Origin: Entomortierella parvispora E1425
Taxonomy: Eukaryota > Fungi > Mortierellomycota
Reading direction: 5' to 3'
Length of the DNA stretch: 64,000 nucleotides
Assembly (NCBI GenBank): GCA_020891255.1
Contig: BQFW01000005.1
Location: 372,001-436,000, forward strand
The notes beneath the pieces are model-generated. The model had not been told where the DNA came from, did no database searches, and saw only the letters and a list, made by a program, of their open reading frames with translations. Position numbers and translations under genes: made by a program. Of the stretch, positions 17,782-27,400 are shown piece by piece. How positions within the stretch are numbered: the stretch's first letter is position 1; each line of letters opens with the position of its first letter.

Positions 17782-19152
17782 TTATGGCACTACCGCCTTG
17801 TTGGTCGCCACGGAATGGCGACGGTTTGATTCATTGATCGTGAACCTGTGGATATATGGCTTTTCCTCAAGCCTGTCTCTGTTCTTGTTGACCACGTTCT
17901 GGAATGCAATGAGGATCTCGGTCGAGTGGTCCTTTGATAGGTGGTTAGAGTCGCAATGCATCTTGATCTCGACATCCACAAAGAGTGGGTACTGATGAAG
18001 GATAGAAGGTGTCATCTTGGGGTATTAGCACCATCAAGGAAAGAAAAAAATATTTGCCCGCATTCTCACCGAGAGAGAGTGAAACCAAGGGATAATACTT
18101 ACGTCTTGGTAGAACTCGTCTGCACCAAGGTGGACAATCGTCTCGTCATCACAGCAAGTGTCCAACATGAAAACATGGCCACACCGGATGTGAATGAAGG
18201 ACTTTGAGATACCGGACCAGACCTTGGGGTCTTGTCTCAAGTGTTGTTCGATCGACTGGACCGAGCTCTGGATGTTATCCTCAAGGACCGGAATGGAGTC
18301 AGAGATCGTAGGCTCTACCAACTTTTCTGTCAGCCAAGCTTCCAACATGCGACAAATCACATTCGTCTTTGCGTTGCCATGGGAGGCCAGATGTGGAATC
18401 TAGAAGCGTTGGATGATCCAGGAGTGAGCGTAAAATTGTTTGTTAAATTGGAGGACGCGTTTCTTCTTTCTATAGCCAAAACATATCCCTCGAGAAAAAC
18501 CAAAGAAGGGCGCAAAACAAGAACCTACAGCAAGGAATCCACCACCTCGACCAATCCCATCGAAAAAGTAGGTAGTGCGGATGGTCGAGACACTTTTCCA
18601 GTAGTCTTCCTCCATCGTGTTCAAAAAGTACTCATAACTCTCACGATCTTTCTTGGATTGCACAGAGGACGTGATGTTGCTCGAAAAAGTGAACCCAGTC
18701 GGTGTGCTTGATACAGCTCGCATCTCAAGTGGCGACATGGCCGAAGGAGCCGAGCTCGAATGGCGAGACAAGGACAGCTCATCATCGACTTGCTCTTCAT
18801 CACCATCTTGGTCTCTGAACCTTGCCGAGAAGATCTCTTCCTTGTGGCTCTTGTCGTTCTCATAGCCGAGATGGGGGCTCAGCGGAGGCGATGGGATAGT
18901 GATGGCCGCAGATGACGATGCAGATTTGGAGGGCGAGTGCGAAGCGAGATGTGGCACAGACGAGGAGGAGGTGGACCGAGTGGCTGTGGGACGAAGGGCG
19001 GAGGATGAGACTGGTTTTGTTGTGGGCAGCTTGGTCGAGGGCTTCTTGCGGGCTACGGAAAAGGGCATCGTTCGAGGGAGGACATGGTGCATCAGAGGCG
19101 AGGGTGGGGCAGAGGAGCAGAGCGAGGATGATGAAGAATACAAGAGGTCCAT
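17782..19152 (-). CDS. Hypothetical protein: Ser/Pro-rich disordered N-terminus plus an unrecognised globular C-terminal domain; 3 exons
   Basis: Coding-like ORFs joined in frame by a GTAGGT...TAG intron (YFFDGIGRGGGFLA|IPHLASHGNAKTNVICRMLEAWL) and a second intron at about 18100-18020. Family not recognised. Confidence 0.6.
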
Positions 19153-21512
19153 GGTAGAGAGAGAGACAGAGAGAGAGATAGAGAAGACGATTAGGTTGCA
19201 GACATAGAAACGAGATGGCAAGAAAGAAGAAAGAAGCACTGTGGGAAGATAATGAAAGAATGAAAGGACCGAGAACCAAAAAAAGACCCGCGGTGAGATG
19301 GCCGTTGGATTGGCGTGTGTGCGCCGTGCCCCGGGGGTCTCGTGCGCAGCGGACGATCACACCTTGTTTGTTCTGCTTTAGCTCATCTCACTCGCTGGCA
19401 GAGGACGGTCATTCATGGCCGCCCTCTGCTGGCCTCTTGCCGCCATCATCCTATCGTTTTGTTCCCACCATCCGCCTCTCACTGCCATGGACATGGCCAT
19501 GCATGGCTGGCCCCTCGTCCTCAGGGAGGAGAAATACAAAACGCCCATTGACCACTATGTCAGAGGCTTCATTTCCTCCCCTTGTGTCACACCATTTTGC
19601 GCTCTGGACCCGAGGATCTGGAGTGCCCAGGCCAATAAAACGCGCGCATTGGTAATTACGAACGATATCCCGGACCACTTCTTTCTCCCTTGCTCTCTTT
19701 GGGGTAGGGGGGGGGGCAAAGCTTCTCTCTTGCTCTCTCTCGCTCTCTCTCGCCCTCCCTCTGTCTCTCTGTCTCTGTCTCTCTCTAACACACCCTCTGT
19801 CTCTCCGCCCCTCTCTCTTCACCCGTATCGTACGAAAAATGGTCTAGTCCAAGAGACACTTCTTTTTTTCCTTGCTCCTTTTACCAGTCGCCCCATCGTA
19901 CGCCCATCACCACAGCCTAGTTGACCCAATTGTTGTTATCACTGCTGAGAAAGCGTCAGCTCAGAGCCGATGGGTACGCCAATGCTGAAGGGAACTCAAA
20001 ACAATATCTGCTTAGAATCGAGGAGCCCTTGACGTACCTGGCAGCGAGAGTGGTGGTGTGCTTGTGGTGAGAGGAGATAGAAGCATGGCGAAAGAAACAA
20101 GCGTTTGCTGGGCAAAATGCGGAGGATGTTGGCGAGTTGCTGGTTGTTGGGAAGGAGGGAGTTGAGTGTGTTGGAAGGAAAAGGATTGGAAAAAGAAGTC
20201 AGGAACAGCCTCCAATGGTCAAACGTGGGGACAACAAGAGTGGTTACGGAAGAAAGAAGAGGAAATGCGCGCAACCTGATGGAGATGCAGCGCTGATAAA
20301 GAAAAAAAAATCGGTTAGACTGGATGGCAAAAGAAATACGGGAAGGAAGGAGAAGGTGCAAAATGCGCTAATTAAGCCTGCCTCTTTTTTTGCTGGTCAA
20401 GCAACTCAAGGAATGGGGGAAGCAGGATGGTGGGGTCCGATGATCGAGCCTTAATTTGTTCCACTCTCTTTTTTCACCTTGACAGAGTGAAGGTAATGTC
20501 GGTGCTGAAGGACAACGTCGAGTGATCCAGACTTGAACCGGAGAAGCCCGACCTCCCCTATCTTGCCCTTCTCTATCGTGCTCTTTTCACTCTGCCCTGT
20601 TTGGTCTCCTTTTGTTCACCACACCTGTTCTCTCCTACTCGGCCACATCTCGCCATGTTGGCGTTATATTTCAGAGCGGTGCAGGGCTTCTTCTCGAACT
20701 TTCTGGTCCGCCAATGTCGACCGGACCATCCACAACTCCCAGCCTTTTCTTTTCAACCAAATTCTTTCTTTCTTGTCCTTTTTTTTTTCCTTCCGGCCAG
20801 CTCCTTTGAATGGAGGGAAGATCATCTCGTCCACGGGTGAAATGCCACATGAGATAGAACAAAGGTCCATTTGTTCTCTGTAACTGCACCTTTTGTACCT
20901 TTTAGGGATGGGATAGGTTGGGATGTATAAAAAGGGGGTGAGGGGTGAGGACAAAGTCGGGACAAGGGGGTCCATTGTGCATCATCATTCGTCACTGCTG
21001 AGACAGGACATAAGACCATTGCCTCTTTCTTGTAGAGGAAAAGAGCCCCAAGCTTCCTCGTGGACCATGAGTTGTGTTGGACCCTTGAAGTACAATGGTC
21101 ACGCCCCACAACAGCCTGGCTGGGTGGGATAACTATTTTTTCTGAATTTGTGGGGATCTGTTCAACGGTCAGTTCTGTGATAATCTCCACCATTGCGCGT
21201 CATAGTGTGTGCTTGATGACCTTGCTATTTCCTAGTTTTATTCCTGGACGCGACAAAATGGTGGCCGCAGTCGCTGAATAAGGGGGGCGGCTTGCAAGGA
21301 CTTGGGGATTCCCGTACAGCGTACCAGTAAGCCATGTGGCAGTGCGGGCTCAGGAACAAGACAAAAGTAAAAGAAGACAAGATTTGTTTCCTTTCTTTCT
21401 TCCTTCACAAACCAAGAGCTCCTCCACCACCCCAGATCTTGGTTGCTGCAATTAACAAGATCTTCAGGCTCCTGGACTCGAACCTCTTTTTTCCCCAGAG
21501 ATAGAGAATAAA

Positions 21513-24248
21513 ATGGTGAACTTTACAGTCGAGCAAATACGCGATCTGGTAGGAACAAGATGCTTGACTACTCTTTGATTTGTCTTTCACCATTCAGCAA
21601 CATCCACTGAGCAGATAAAATTGGCCAATATACCTTTACAGATGGGCAAGGCGACGAATATCCGGAATATGTCCATTCTTGCGCTCTCTGACCACCAAGC
21701 GACTGAATTGATCAACATCCTAACCGTCTCGGAAGCTCGGATTGATTGCACTGGATATTCAGATCCTACCTGCCTCAAAGACCCAAACCATCTCGACAAT
21801 GAGGACCTGCCAGTGATCACCAAGACTATAACTGCACCTCTGTACTTTGAGGTGGCAGAAGAGACTCTTTCATTAACGAAGCAGCAATCCACCGGTAAAG
21901 CAAATTGGAGTACCATGTCATTCTGATGTTGTATTTGGGAGACCCAGAACTAATCCCCATCATGGTACCACATTGGACAAATAGGTTCTGCTTTCTTTAT
22001 CAACTTGATCGAGCCTCCACGGAACATTGACATCTACAATGAGGTAGCAGCCACGTTTGGTATCGCAGATGGAGCGCTCATTGTCGTCAATTGTGTGGAC
22101 CCAATTCCTTTCCAAATCAGAAACGTGCTGCGCCAGGTTATCAGTGTTCGGGCCAAACCACTTTTAGTCTTGAATCAGATTGAGCCGGCCATCCAAGAAT
22201 CTAATGTGACCCCAGAGGAACTCTACCAGTCTTTTGTTCGAACCATCGAGTCTGTCAACAGCATAGTGGAGACATATCATGTTAACAAGGATGCCTTTGG
22301 GGACGATCTCTTGTTCCACCCAGATCAGTCGACCGTGGCTTTTGCTTCAGGAAAGAGCGACTGGGCGTTCACAATCGACATGTTTGCACAGCGGTACGCC
22401 AAAAGGTTTGGTGTGGACCGTGCCAAGATTGCTCAAAAGTTCTGGGGCGACAGTTACTTCAACATGGCGACCAAGAAATGGGCGACGGAGAGCTTGGATG
22501 CGGATGGCCAGCCTTTGGAGCGCAGCTTTGTCATGTTTATTCTGAACCCAATCTTCAAACTGATGGACGCTATTTTGACTTTCAAGACTGAGGCATGGCA
22601 AGCAATGTTGCAGAAGCTAGAGATAAAGTTGAGCAGGGCCGAGAATGAGCTGAACGGTAAAGCACTCTTGAAGGTGGTGATGAACAAGTTCCTGCCTGCC
22701 AAAGATGCGCTTTTGGAGATGTCTGTTCTCCACTTGCCCTCCCCCGTCACGGCTCAAAAGTACCGAGTGGAGACTTTGTACGAAGGCCCGATGAATGACG
22801 AGTGCGCGGCAGGCATCCGCCGTTGCGATCCAGACGGCCCTCTCATGATGCACATCTCCAAGATGATACGGACAACAGACAAGGGTCGTTTCTACGGGCT
22901 AGGCCGCGTCTTCTCCGGCACGATCCGCGCAGGCGCCAGGGTTCGGATCATGGGCCCCTCACACACAGTCGGCACCAAGACGGATTTATTCCTGAGGCCC
23001 ATGCAACGTCTTGTTCTCATGTCAAAAGGGAACCCACCTGTTGTGGACTGTCCGGCCGGCAACGTGATTGGGGTGGTCGGGGTTGACCAGTTCCTGCTTC
23101 AGTCTGGGACAATCACCAGTTCGGATAGTGCATACAACATGAGGAATATCAAGTTCTCCATTACACCTGTGGTTGGAATCACGGTCGCCCCCAAGGATCC
23201 AAATGATCTGACGAAACTTGTCCAAAGTCTCACTCGCCTCGCCAGATGGGGTTCTGGTATTCAGAGCAGTGTCTTGTTCACGGGGGAACATTTCCTGTCA
23301 GGTCCAGAGGAACAGACCCTCAACCTATGCCTGCAGGAGCTTGAAAAAGATATGGGTGAGGTGCCGATCGTCAAGTCTGAGCCCTTTGTACAATACCGGG
23401 AAACGGTCCAGGCAGAGTCTTCTGCCACTGCCCTGTCCAAGACCCCCAATAGACACTCTCGTTTCTTCATGAGGGCGAGCCCCCTTAGCCAGGAGCTCAC
23501 ATGTGCTATCGAAAGTGGAAAGTTGAACGCCAGAAATGAGTTCAAGGTGTCTGCTCGCGCCCTAACAGAAAATTACGGCTGGAGCAAAATCGACGCGCGC
23601 AACATTTGGGCCTTTGGTCCCGACGCAGCGGGGTCTAATCTTCTCGTCGATTGCACCCATGGTGTGTCCTATTTGAATGAGATCAAGGAGGCTTTTACTA
23701 CGGGATTTAATTGGGCAACGCGCTCGGGTGTCTTTACGGAAGAGCCTGTCCGCGGGTGCAGGTTTAACATCTTGGATGTCGTGATGACATGCGACGCGAT
23801 TCATCGTGGTGGAGGCCAGATCATCCCTGGCAGTCGGAGCGTTATCTATGCGTCCATGTTCCTTGCACAGCCCGGGTTTATGGAGCCCGTATATTCTGTA
23901 GATCTGATCTGTCCTGAGCGCTTCATGTCCGATTTGGCAGCACTCTTAGAAAGGCATCGCGGTGTCGTCCTTGGAGAGGAGGGCTGGCAGTTGGTAAGTC
24001 CTAGAGATCGGGTCCACACGGTCAAAGCCCATTTGCCGGTAGCGGAGTCCTCCGAGTTTCTGGCCGCGCTTTCCAAGGCTCCTGGTGGCCAAGCGGTTGT
24101 TTGTCAAATGGTTTTTGATCATTGGAAGCTGATGCCTGGAGTTATAAATGAGGACCCCCAATTGATCGAGCTCGTGAAGGCGATCCGGAAGCGCAAAGGA
24201 CTGGAAGAAGAACTACCAAAGATTGAGCGTTTCCTGGACAGGTTATAG
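21513..24248 (+). CDS. Divergent eEF2 paralog with degenerate GTPase motifs (predicted pseudo-GTPase); exons 21513-21548, 21642-21894, 21985-24248
   Basis: MVNFTVEQIRDL|MGKATNIRNMS, DGALIVV, WAFTI, GRFYGLGRVFSG, VQYRETV, NIWAFGPD, DAIHRGGGQIIP, FDHWK and IRKRKGL are collinear with eEF2 domains I-V. Confidence 0.92.
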
Positions 24249-24432
24249 AACCACATCCAGAAGGACGAGCCTCAAAATATATGATTGCTATTTTTTGCAT
24301 TTTTGGCTTGTTTTATTGAGCTCTTGAAGCAGCGACTTTGGCAAAGACTTTGTGGTCCGGAAAGCCTGCCGACGATTAGAAATATTTTCTAGTCGTTTTA
24401 TTCTAAAAAAAAGGGGGGGGGGAAATCTACAT

Positions 24433-27400
24433 CTACAGTTTAGAGTATCTCAACAAATCCGCTACTGGGTACGGTGCGCGACTCAACTCGAGTCCAGCCT
24501 TGAATCCGACAATGTCCTCGATGACCTTTGTACCATCCCTCAGGGAACCGGGGGCCAGGAACTCCTCCTCCTCTTGCTGCGTCAGGACTGTCGCTCCATC
24601 CTTGGCGTCCTTGACCTCCTTCTTGACAGGTGGGACCTTCTGGGACTGGATGTGGACAGAAAGCTTTTTAGCCTTGTGGGCGGAGGGCAAGATTGCGCTC
24701 TTGAAAAAGTCGCGGGTCATGGCCAAGCTAGTCTTTCGCATCTCCTCGACCTCATCCTGCAATTCGTCAAAGTCATAGTAACCCGACACGATCTGTCCCC
24801 AGTAGCGGTACGTCTCCTGTCTCAAGTTCTTGTCCTTCTCCAATTTCTTTTGAATCAACGAGTTGACCTGCTTTGCGTACTCTTCTTCTGTCATGTCGTC
24901 CAAGTACTTCTTCATCCTCAATTCCAAAAACTTTTCAATGCGGCTCTCCAAGTGAACAGGGTCGCGCTCTGACTGGAGAATGAATCGAAGGCCAACGGCG
25001 CCAGTCTGCTTACGCACTCCGCTAAAGACCAAATAGCCGAGCTGCTCCTTGGTACGGAGCTGATTGAAACAGGGCTCGTTAATAATCTGAGCCATGATCT
25101 GGATACGTGCCCGGCTCTGCTTGCTGGTGGCGTCCTCAATCTGCAGATAGTATTCCAATCCAGAGTTCACATTATCTGGGTCGGAGACATCCCGCTTGTA
25201 GACAGCCTTGCATTGCTCAGGCAACAAGTGCGAGCGTTGTGACAACAGCTCTGAGGGAACCAAAGCCTTGGGAGACAATCCCTCCTCGATAATTTCTCCT
25301 GCCTTGAGAGCCTCTGCCGCCGCCATGTTACCATGGACCAATCCTTCGATGTGGAGTCTAGCCAAAAGAGAGGGGTAGAACGCCGCAATATCCTCTGGGG
25401 TGATGTCGTGCAATTCCGCCAACTTTTCCTCCTGAGTCCAGAGCTTTTCCTGGGTCAAATATGACATGTAATACATGGCATGCTGATGAGGTGCCTCCAA
25501 CTTGAAGTTTTTGTACATCCTATCCATTTGATCCTGAATCAAACGGAATCGATCTGGGTTGATCTCGAGGTTTCGCATGCGCTCAACGACCTTTTGGAGG
25601 AGGACAGTAGCCTTATCGTTGTAACCCTCGACACTGAGAATCATCCCCTCGACAGTGGTCTCCAATCCATATGACAAACCGGCCAAATCTGCATCGTACG
25701 AGTATTCGTTAAGAGCGTCCTTGAGCAAATTGACGTAAAGTTGAGTCTTGACGTTGTTGCTGGGGGATGAGTAAGACAGAGGAGACTTGAGCTGGAAGTA
25801 CATGTTGACTTTGGGTACCCAAAAGACATCGTCCTTCTTGTGCCAGATCCGTGTCAAAGGAGTGTGCTTCAAAAGGACAGGCGTTTGCTGAGGAGTGGTT
25901 GTTGGCACCTTGTTGGTCTCAAAGTTCTCTGGAATAAAGTCGTTGGGGATGGGCAAGAACAGATCGGGGTTGGGCTCGAGATTGTGGAGGCGCTATGGTA
26001 TTCGAAAGAGTAGAGCACAAGTTAAAAGCCCGTCACTATAGCCGTGACAAGAGCAGAGTAGCATGTTCTATCAACCAAGTCCTTACCTCCAACAGGGCGG
26101 GCGAGACGTTCTCGACGTGGTACTCAGTGCCGTACCATTTCTCCGTCTTTTCGAAAGCGCCACCAGGAACAACAGAAAGATCCTGAGCAACCAGATGACT
26201 CTTCCAAGCGTCGACTTTCAAGGCATCGATACAGGCCATAATCATGTTAGGGTCTGATCCACGAATCAGGTACGATCCAGACAAGGTCCACTCAGGAGCG
26301 TAGCCTCGCTGCATCACACCCGCCAAGCGAGAGACGTATCCTGATGCAGGCGATTTCTCCTTGAATCTAAACGAGGTCGTAGCCAAGGATGCGATCTACA
26401 AACGAAACCAAACTTGGGTCAGTTCCTGTGCCAGGTCATCTTTGCGGTGATCTAATTTGAGAATCGACGTTTACCTCGTCCCAGATGTAAGGTCGGACAC
26501 CCTCACGGCGGAGCATCTGGATATACTGGAAAATGATAGCAGTGACATCCTCGTAATGAGCAAGACCCTCCTTTGTGAGATCGACAGTAATCTTGAAGAA
26601 CTCGAATCCAATGCCTCCATGCGAAGTTCCGGCAGATAAGTTGTTTGCCCAGCCCTTCTTTTTCAGCAAAGAAAGGATTGATCCGCCACCTTCATGTCCA
26701 ATGGCATGGGTGATGTATCGAGCAGGATGAATGGTGTAGTTGGGGTACTGATCTGGGAAAGGAAACTTGATTTCCAATGAACGAATATCCTTGACGGGCT
26801 TGACATAGGTTGTTTTCTAGAGGTAAAAGTAACATGAATATTGTCAATACGAACATGGTCTTAACAAGGGAGGCGTTCGTTTGACTAAAGACGGTGTCCA
26901 TACCAAAAGATCGCCCGTAGTCCATGGGGGGTTCGTGTTTGCTGGAGGCTTGATAGCGAGATTCTTGACATCCGAAAACTTCTCAATCGCCCATGCAGCA
27001 AGTTGATCCAAAGGCTCTATTAAATTTCGCCGAAGAAACGGTGTAAATTTCCGACATTCGAAGGCTTTGCTGCTCTTCTCCCTCTAAATCCGCAACTCTT
27101 ACCTCGACCCAGAATAACGAGCTTCATGATGTTGGCAGAGTAGTACTTTGCATGGAACTTGATCAGCTCGTCTCTGACATCCAATCCTTCCCGACCGGGC
27201 GCATCCTGCAGTGTTTCCAAGTTTCCTGTTCCGAAATTGCTGTAAGGGTGCTCAGGGTTGGAGAGATTTTTCTCCAACTGGAACAATCTCCAGCTATCGC
27301 TCTGCAAGTTCTTCTTGTGTTCCGAATCGACCGCGCGCAGCTCACGGTCCTTGCAGTTTTCGCTAAAAGCAGGCGAAATAAAAAACTGGGCAAAACGATC

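Follow-up and report, generated by a model that had tools for sequence, protein, structure and literature searches.

The gene described here lies in a 64,000-nucleotide stretch of the Entomortierella parvispora E1425 genome (assembly GCA_020891255.1, contig BQFW01000005.1, positions 372,001 to 436,000 of the forward strand), hereafter called the window. It is a divergent copy of eukaryotic elongation factor 2 (eEF2), termed copy A, in which the GTPase motifs G1 to G4 are lost. Copy A occupies positions 21513-24248 of the forward strand and comprises three exons with 850 codons and a single terminal stop. Exon 1 (21513-21548) encodes residues 1-12, MVNFTVEQIRDL, which is the canonical eEF2 N-terminus; its boundary is found at the same position in the canonical E. 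parvispora eEF2 (L084) and in the Gryganskiella copy. Exon 2 (21642-21894; residues 13-97) holds the remnants of the P-loop (G1) and of switch I, and exon 3 (21985-24248; residues 97-850 and the stop) encodes the remaining G domain, subdomain G' and domains II-V. Intron 1 (21549-21641, 93 nt) and intron 2 (21895-21984, 90 nt, phase 1) both have GT..AG ends. The encoded protein is identical to GJJ71265.1 (P0001) from the same E. parvispora assembly, where its contig measures 1.91 Mb, and in NCBI and UniRef it is labelled plainly as "elongation factor 2".

Several observations place copy A within eEF2. First, a phmmer search against the PDB gave 832 bits for eEF2 (chain 7old_C), in a full-length match, 412 bits for Snu114 and 208 bits for EFL1. 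These scores, together with a tree placement inside the eEF2 of a single fungal family, rule out that copy A is Snu114 or EFL1, and it is an ortholog of neither. Second, Pfam detected GTP_EFTU (weakly, 29.9 bits), GTP_EFTU_D2, EFG_IV and EFG_C; EFG_III was not detected in copy A, and only one other part of the protein is more eroded than domain III. Third, the AlphaFold2 (AF2) model, with a mean predicted local distance difference test (pLDDT) score of 78.8, has the five-domain eEF2 fold G(+G')-II-III-IV-V and superposes on free yeast eEF2 (1zm2, 1n0v) with template modelling (TM) scores of 0.84-0.90. Low-confidence stretches of the model are the former switch I (residues 50-74), switch II (108-116), an insertion in domain V (762-769) and residues 196-200, 485-490 and 796-800; pLDDT falls below 50 at 50-74 and 762-769. 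Neither Pfam nor the model revealed a new domain or extension.

The state of the GTPase motifs was read from an alignment of copy A to canonical eEF2. The P-loop (G1) remnant at 21681-21707 reads ALSDHQATE in place of AHVDHGKST, with loss of the Lys and the Ser. The switch I/G2 segment, residues 44-74 (21735-21827, the canonical RGITIKS region), is replaced, which leaves neither the G2 Thr nor a site of the eEF2 Thr56/57 type. G3/switch II reads EPPRN in place of DSPGH (22011-22025), and G4 reads NQIE in place of NKVD (22173-22184). In the G5 region (22344-22364), SGKSDW stands in place of SGLHGW, so that Ser-Gly is kept. Near-invariant positions were defined as the 410 columns with at least 97% agreement among 143 canonical eEF2 sequences. 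Since the affected columns belong to this class, chance is no explanation for the motif losses. Alternative splicing that would supply intact motifs, which the original prediction had named as a possible refutation, was considered and rejected: no exon with GK[ST], DxPGH or NKxD is present in 18000-24400 on either strand.

Losses of this class are also found in three other sequences. Two are orthologs of copy A, 73% identical to it, in assemblies from other organisms: L001 (Logan), with the motifs AYPHHGAKE, EPSRH and NQIE, and L002 (ENA metagenome assembly), with EYPDHGATE, EPPRH and SQIE. The third is a second paralog in E. parvispora itself, copy B (P0034, 851 aa, L003:8001-10743), which reads AQKGHGATE, YPPRH and NQID and has an intact diphthamide loop. 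Copy B lies on the same contig as copy A, about 41 kb away in record coordinates and about 19.6 kb before the window start. None of the four sequences retains the P-loop Lys, the Ser/Thr Mg ligand, the switch I Thr, the DxxG Asp or Gly, or the NKxD Lys; they are therefore called dead below. The original prediction had listed ALSDHQAT, the replaced switch I, EPPRN and NQIE in copy A, and the alignment bears this out. It had further described an intact N-terminus, intact splice sites and collinear domains II-V, on which the gene model, Pfam and AF2 agree. Its last exon of 747 codons has to be corrected to 754 (21985-24248), as the shorter figure corresponds to a mechanical open reading frame starting from a TTG at 22005. 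The claim that every nucleotide-contacting motif is lost holds for G1-G4 and is slightly overstated for G5, where the change from LHG to KSD is mild and restricted to copy A, and copy B retains SGLHGW. Similarly, the catalytic His of G3 is missing in copy A as claimed; L001, L002 and P0034 retain it.

Outside the G core, much of the protein has been retained. Copy A keeps 44% (41-45%) of the near-invariant columns in the G core, 55% (53-57%) in domain III, 67% in domain V, 75% in domain II, and 84% in both subdomain G' (80-86%) and domain IV (78-90%). Subdomain G' (residues 216-345; 22341-22730) is the best-conserved part. Both tip loops of domain IV characteristic of eEF2 are recognizable. 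The first reads TPNRHS in place of SPNKHN (23442-23459). The second is the diphthamide loop TCDAIHRGGGQIIP (23787-23828), in which the letters DAIHRGGGQIIP are present: of HxDxxHRG only the first His is replaced, so that the target His and DxxHRG persist. Both dead paralogs of E. parvispora thus retain the diphthamide His and the DxxHRGGGQIIP core, while the GTPase machinery is gone. The L001 and L002 orthologs alter this loop to HRGSG. A segment of domain V (23976-24014) carries a 4-aa insertion relative to canonical eEF2 that is common to copies A and B.

Identity between copies A and B is only 55%, and their synonymous divergence (dS) is above 2. Even so, A, its two orthologs and B have the identical derived residue at 28 of the canonical near-invariant columns, including K32A, T34E, T54P, S78P, S107P, G109R, D132N, G136P and K161Q. 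Given the identity and dS of the two copies, these states must have been fixed before the A/B duplication and kept since. The prolines T54P, S78P, S107P and G136P of the G core, at canonical near-invariant positions and common to both dead paralogs, fall together with G109R within or between the remnants of G1/switch I, G3 and G4. The persistence of the common derived states marks a newly constrained state and not drift.

In a maximum likelihood (ML) tree under LG+C20+F+G4 with posterior mean site frequencies (PMSF), hereafter the careful tree, A and B are grouped with 100/100 support and nested within Mortierellaceae eEF2, again with 100/100. The stem of the dead clade is long (0.54), and its position relative to the family's two canonical sub-clades is a polytomy. 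These two sub-clades ('a' and 'b') are represented by one gene each in several of the tree species; E. parvispora has both. Its two canonical eEF2 genes are P0005 and P0051. Both intron positions of copy A equal those of canonical E. parvispora eEF2, and such retention of parental introns indicates duplication at the DNA level and not retroposition. The dead clade therefore goes back to a DNA-level duplication of eEF2 within Mortierellaceae, and the losses of the P-loop Lys and Ser, the switch I Thr, the DxxG Asp and Gly and the NKxD Lys preceded the duplication into the linked copies A and B.

Another divergent eEF2 duplicate in Mortierellaceae is P0132 of Gryganskiella cystojenkinii (866 aa, L085:5001-7853), which is in tandem with a canonical eEF2 (L085:4-4364). 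Like the dead copies, it has a long branch and no codon bias, its effective number of codons (ENC) being 57. Nearly half of its changes at near-invariant columns (42/99) are in columns also changed in all four dead sequences, where about 20 would be expected by chance. Unlike the dead copies, it keeps GxxxxGKT, DCPGH and NKVD, has lost only the switch I Thr and has just 4 of the 28 derived states in common with them. P0132 appeared as sister of the dead clade with a support of 95 in a quick tree, which carried a long-branch warning. In the careful tree this relationship is a polytomy. With the dead clade removed, P0132 groups with its own tandem canonical neighbour. It may represent an intermediate stage or a parallel case.

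The exon structure of both orthologs equals that of copy A. L002 is syntenic with the window on both flanks, including an M16 (insulinase-type) peptidase gene downstream on the opposite strand, the large exon of which is at 24433-25956 (reverse strand) in the window, outside the copy A gene. In L001 the M16 peptidase is likewise downstream, and upstream matches are weak. The peptidase exon is 87-92% identical to the L001 and L002 copies, and it served both as synteny anchor and as rate control. A JGI metagenome fragment, L071, is 99% identical to L002 and so comes from the same species. In isolate X3, a public run with the same species label, the whole gene is present at about 6% nucleotide divergence. 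Relative to copy A it has 186 substitutions and 12 indels. None of the 12 indels falls in the 2553 coding nucleotides, which make up 83% of the stretch; all are in the flanks or in the two introns, with a 1-nt insertion in intron 1 and three indels in intron 2. Exon 2 of X3 has 18 substitutions, 8 of them changing an amino acid, and no indel, and its G1 reads AHSDHEATE.

Selection was estimated as omega (dN/dS). By the Nei-Gojobori method (NG86), omega among the three orthologs is 0.17-0.19 at a dS of 0.6-1.0. In the GY+F3X4 codon model, the ML estimate for the whole gene is 0.21, and twice the log-likelihood difference (2ΔlnL) from omega = 1 is 390. The most constrained parts are G' (omega 0.10, 2ΔlnL 100.6) and domain II (0.12, 108.0), followed by domain IV (0.22, 74.1) and the G core (0.24, 87.5), while domains III (0.35, 19.6) and V (0.35, 26.9) are the most relaxed. 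Even codons 13-96, which contain the former P-loop and switch I, have an omega of 0.19 (2ΔlnL 49.5). The dead copy, G core included, has thus stayed intact in at least three lineages of species level, under purifying selection. Three of the checks proposed in the original prediction turned out in its favour: in the phylogeny, copy A falls inside Mortierellaceae eEF2; syntenic orthologs with the same motif loss exist (L001 and L002); and domain-wise dN/dS is 0.10-0.35, with omega = 1 rejected throughout. Its interpretation is supported in part. The view that selection has maintained a nucleotide-independent eEF2-like protein, as opposed to simple decay, is upheld by the omega of 0.21, the losses in the orthologs, the X3 indels and the 28 derived residues; a role as ribosome-binding regulator or hibernation-type factor, which it also suggested, is a possibility taken up below.

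By established G-protein chemistry, GTP is neither bound nor hydrolyzed by a G domain that lacks the P-loop Lys and Ser/Thr, the switch I Thr, the DxxG Asp and Gly and the NKxD Lys. Copy A has no P-loop Lys, no Mg or gamma-phosphate ligands and no Lys for guanine specificity, and therefore it is expected neither to bind nor to hydrolyze GTP. Translocase activity is GTP-dependent and is predicted to be absent from copy A. By its sequence, copy A is outside eEF2 as a GTPase and inside the class of pseudoGTPases: the G-domain fold is kept with the key nucleotide and Mg ligands replaced, and omega, the X3 indels and the derived states indicate that the gene is kept by selection, with the caveat of a stop codon in L002 described below. 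The features that would mark a pseudogene, namely lost introns, frameshifts or stops and an omega near 1, are not seen in copy A.

Overall, we consider it fairly probable that copy A is a lineage-specific pseudo-GTPase derived from eEF2 which probably still docks on the ribosome. The two parts of this proposal differ in strength. That a dead GTPase has been maintained by selection is very likely, while its function as a ribosome-docking regulator is a tentative suggestion, with the balance somewhat against it. The kept tip of domain IV and the kept, putatively stalk-binding subdomain G' are compatible with ribosome docking. In archaeal aEF-2, the C-terminal helix of the P-stalk binds a groove between domain G and G' (Tanzawa et al., PMC5887453), and a putative stalk groove on G' of yeast eEF2 was proposed in the same paper by structure comparison. 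Work cited in the reference list of PMC5887453 shows that the stalk binds factors independently of nucleotide.

A possible mechanism may be outlined as follows. The four changes to proline and G109R probably lock the former switch machinery in one conformation, which would give a rigid, switch-less G core. Docking at the ribosomal factor site would most likely be kept, with G' bound to the tails of the P-stalk in a nucleotide-independent manner and the tip of domain IV directed to the decoding centre. Neither translocation nor release by GTP hydrolysis would follow, and the protein would thus act as a low-abundance, nucleotide-independent competitor of eEF2, a regulator or a placeholder on some ribosomes. 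In its most specific form, the proposal would make copy A the first pseudo-GTPase of the eukaryotic EF2 family: a nucleotide-free, conformationally locked mimic, recruited by the P-stalk and placing a possibly diphthamide-bearing tip in the A site, which tunes, pauses or protects a subset of ribosomes without GTP. We regard this form as speculative and rather doubtful.

Several observations weigh against this reading. First, the constraint on copy A is looser than that on the neighbouring M16 peptidase: omega is about 0.2 versus 0.07 and identity 73% versus 92% (the peptidase values refer to the comparison with the L002 copy). As the omega of copy A exceeds that of the peptidase in the same species pair, the dead eEF2 is constrained, but less tightly. 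A canonical pair (E. parvispora copy a versus the canonical Gryganskiella gene, omega 0.17) was discarded as baseline in favour of the peptidase, because the comparison crosses paralog types and strong codon bias depresses dS. Second, the ENC is 57.8 for copy A and 57.1 for copy B, compared to 27.7 for canonical eEF2 and 47.7 for the M16 peptidase. The near-absence of codon bias in A and B argues for low expression. With an ENC of about 58 versus about 28, abundance during growth is unlikely; this speaks against an abundant, stoichiometric hibernation-type factor, and a regulator would fit better than either such a factor or a toxin sink. Third, no RNA runs are listed for copy A; runs X4, X5 and X9, which carry the same species label, gave just short low-identity pieces from other eEF2 copies. 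Fourth, an in-frame TAG takes the place of the diphthamide-loop Gln in L002 (HRGSG*IIP; L002:9790-9795). The remainder of the L002 frame is open and under the same constraint, and the TAG may be an assembly error, a polymorphism or a very recent loss.

Fifth, the range of the clade is narrow: searches of 5.8 billion proteins, of 1.84 billion representatives and of JGI metagenome contigs yielded no members beyond E. parvispora and two close relatives. P0002 and P0003 were the sole hits of a word search restricted to residues 1-215. A profile of the dead G core run against the 1.84 billion representatives returned only the exon-2 open reading frame of the L002 species (P0300), plus unrelated oddities. 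The scan of JGI metagenome contigs gave canonical eEF2 and a single dead fragment, L071. With copy B as query, no ortholog of B was found elsewhere, and the annotated proteomes of other Mortierellaceae in the searched databases show canonical copies only.

Among the alternatives, the one that survives best is that copy A has acquired a new function outside translation, with the dead scaffold binding another partner, such as a ribonucleoprotein (RNP), an eEF2-specific chaperone or the Dph enzymes, and with G' and domain IV forming the new interface. Snu114 has made a comparable shift, from the ribosome to the spliceosome. The long stem branch (0.54) and the still high rates would fit this possibility, as would the numerous new residues that became fixed and conserved and a low codon bias, which is typical for regulatory proteins; there is also the precedent of Ria1 and Snu114, both from duplication of eEF2 (PMC4342817). 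However, the best-kept parts of copy A are the eEF2-specific, ribosome-facing diphthamide loop, the SPNKHN-type loop and G', and no domain or extension was gained. We consider a function outside translation unlikely.

The retention of the diphthamide loop would also be expected of a decoy. In this case, a catalytically irrelevant copy that keeps the loop or the drug pockets would intercept ADP-ribosylating toxins, or natural products that bind eEF2, of competing or resident microbes. The preservation of the diphthamide His and DxxHRGGGQIIP core in both dead paralogs, with the GTPase machinery discarded, and of 78-90% of the near-invariant columns in domain IV is consistent with such a role. 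A sink needs abundance, yet codon bias is near nil; the strongest constraint is on G' and domain II (omega 0.10-0.12) and not on domain IV (0.22); L001 and L002 have HRGSG in this loop, with the stop of L002 exactly there; and no toxin or biosynthetic cluster is tied to the locus. These points make a decoy quite improbable.

Even less probable is a slowly decaying unprocessed pseudogene, with its frame open by chance or through recent relaxation. The loss of all GTPase motifs and of codon bias, the lack of RNA evidence, the TAG in one ortholog (L002) and an evolution about 3 times faster than that of the neighbouring gene could all be taken as signs of decay. Against this, omega = 1 is rejected for every domain (2ΔlnL 19.6-108; 390 overall), and 850-855 codons are open in copy A, L001 and B despite a dS of 0.6-1.0 among orthologs and above 2 between A and B. 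Furthermore, the X3 indels are solely outside the coding sequence, and derived residues are conserved between the paralogs. Finally, that copy A is still nucleotide-dependent and binds GTP or ATP in a non-canonical way is hardly credible: the G-domain fold and the G5 Ser-Gly are retained, copy B has the G4 Asp (NQID) and the G3 His, and L001 has a Lys displaced by one position (HHGAKE), but the binding residues listed above are replaced in 4/4 sequences, with G109R and several prolines in or beside the former nucleotide-binding motifs.

The preferred reading, a selected pseudo-GTPase that may dock on the ribosome, can be compared with known members of the family. With canonical eEF2 (yeast Eft1/2; 1n0v, 7old), copy A shares the five-domain fold, 53-58% identity, the intron positions of the family, the diphthamide His, most of the domain IV tip and G'. 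Unlike canonical eEF2, it has destroyed G1-G4, relaxed domains III and V, the 4-aa insertion in domain V and no codon bias (ENC 58 versus 28), and it evolves several-fold faster. Snu114 and Ria1 (EFL1) are also eEF2-derived paralogs with new roles; they keep the GTP-binding motifs and lack the diphthamide His. Their duplications predate the last eukaryotic common ancestor, whereas copy A is nested in Mortierellaceae eEF2, and they have extra N-terminal or inserted regions that are absent from copy A. Together with eEF2, these two are the eukaryotic members of the EF2 family in Atkinson's survey (PMC4342817).

Archaea have an extra long-branch EF-2 paralog, aEF-2p, which was judged to be no translocase and has an unknown function (Narrowe et al. 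2018, PMC6143161). It is a mirror image of copy A: it keeps G1-G5 and is predicted to hydrolyze GTP, but its domain IV loops are gone and the diphthamide His with them, while copy A has the opposite pattern. The archaeal translational GTPase aSelBL seems to have lost hydrolysis (PMC6143161). What aSelBL, pseudoGTPases such as degenerate septins (PMC10731463) and copy A have in common is a G fold that persists despite the loss of catalytic or binding residues, in a gene that evolution has maintained; the former belong to other subfamilies than copy A. A full-text literature search, the coverage of which was incomplete and which is thus no proof of novelty, gave no description of a eukaryotic EF2-family paralog with a dead P-loop. 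In a protein of the scallop Argopecten irradians annotated as 'eEF2-like' (P0289, XP_069133299.1; 811 aa, with 33% identity to eEF2), neither the P-loop (GGADSGILP) nor the diphthamide loop survives. This eEF2 derivative is unrelated and has degenerated in a different way.

Few known proteins are as highly conserved as the translational GTPases. In paralogs such as Snu114, Ria1 and aEF-2p, it is normally the business end that changes, while the GTPase switch is left in place. The dead clade of Mortierellaceae is the reverse: the switch has been removed, while the ribosome-probing tip and the putative stalk-binding G' have been kept and preserved as two linked copies. In practical terms, the label 'elongation factor 2' on such copies would mislead uses of EF-2 copy number and phylogeny in Mortierellaceae. 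If the protein does bind ribosomes, it would be a natural separation-of-function allele of eEF2, capable of binding without hydrolysis, and a candidate for a new class of elongation regulator. This would imply a new, genetically separable control of elongation, and would provide a natural GTPase-dead eEF2 for dissecting those steps of translocation that require binding only. If it does not bind ribosomes, it would show how quickly, on an evolutionary scale, the eEF2 scaffold can be turned to a new partner.

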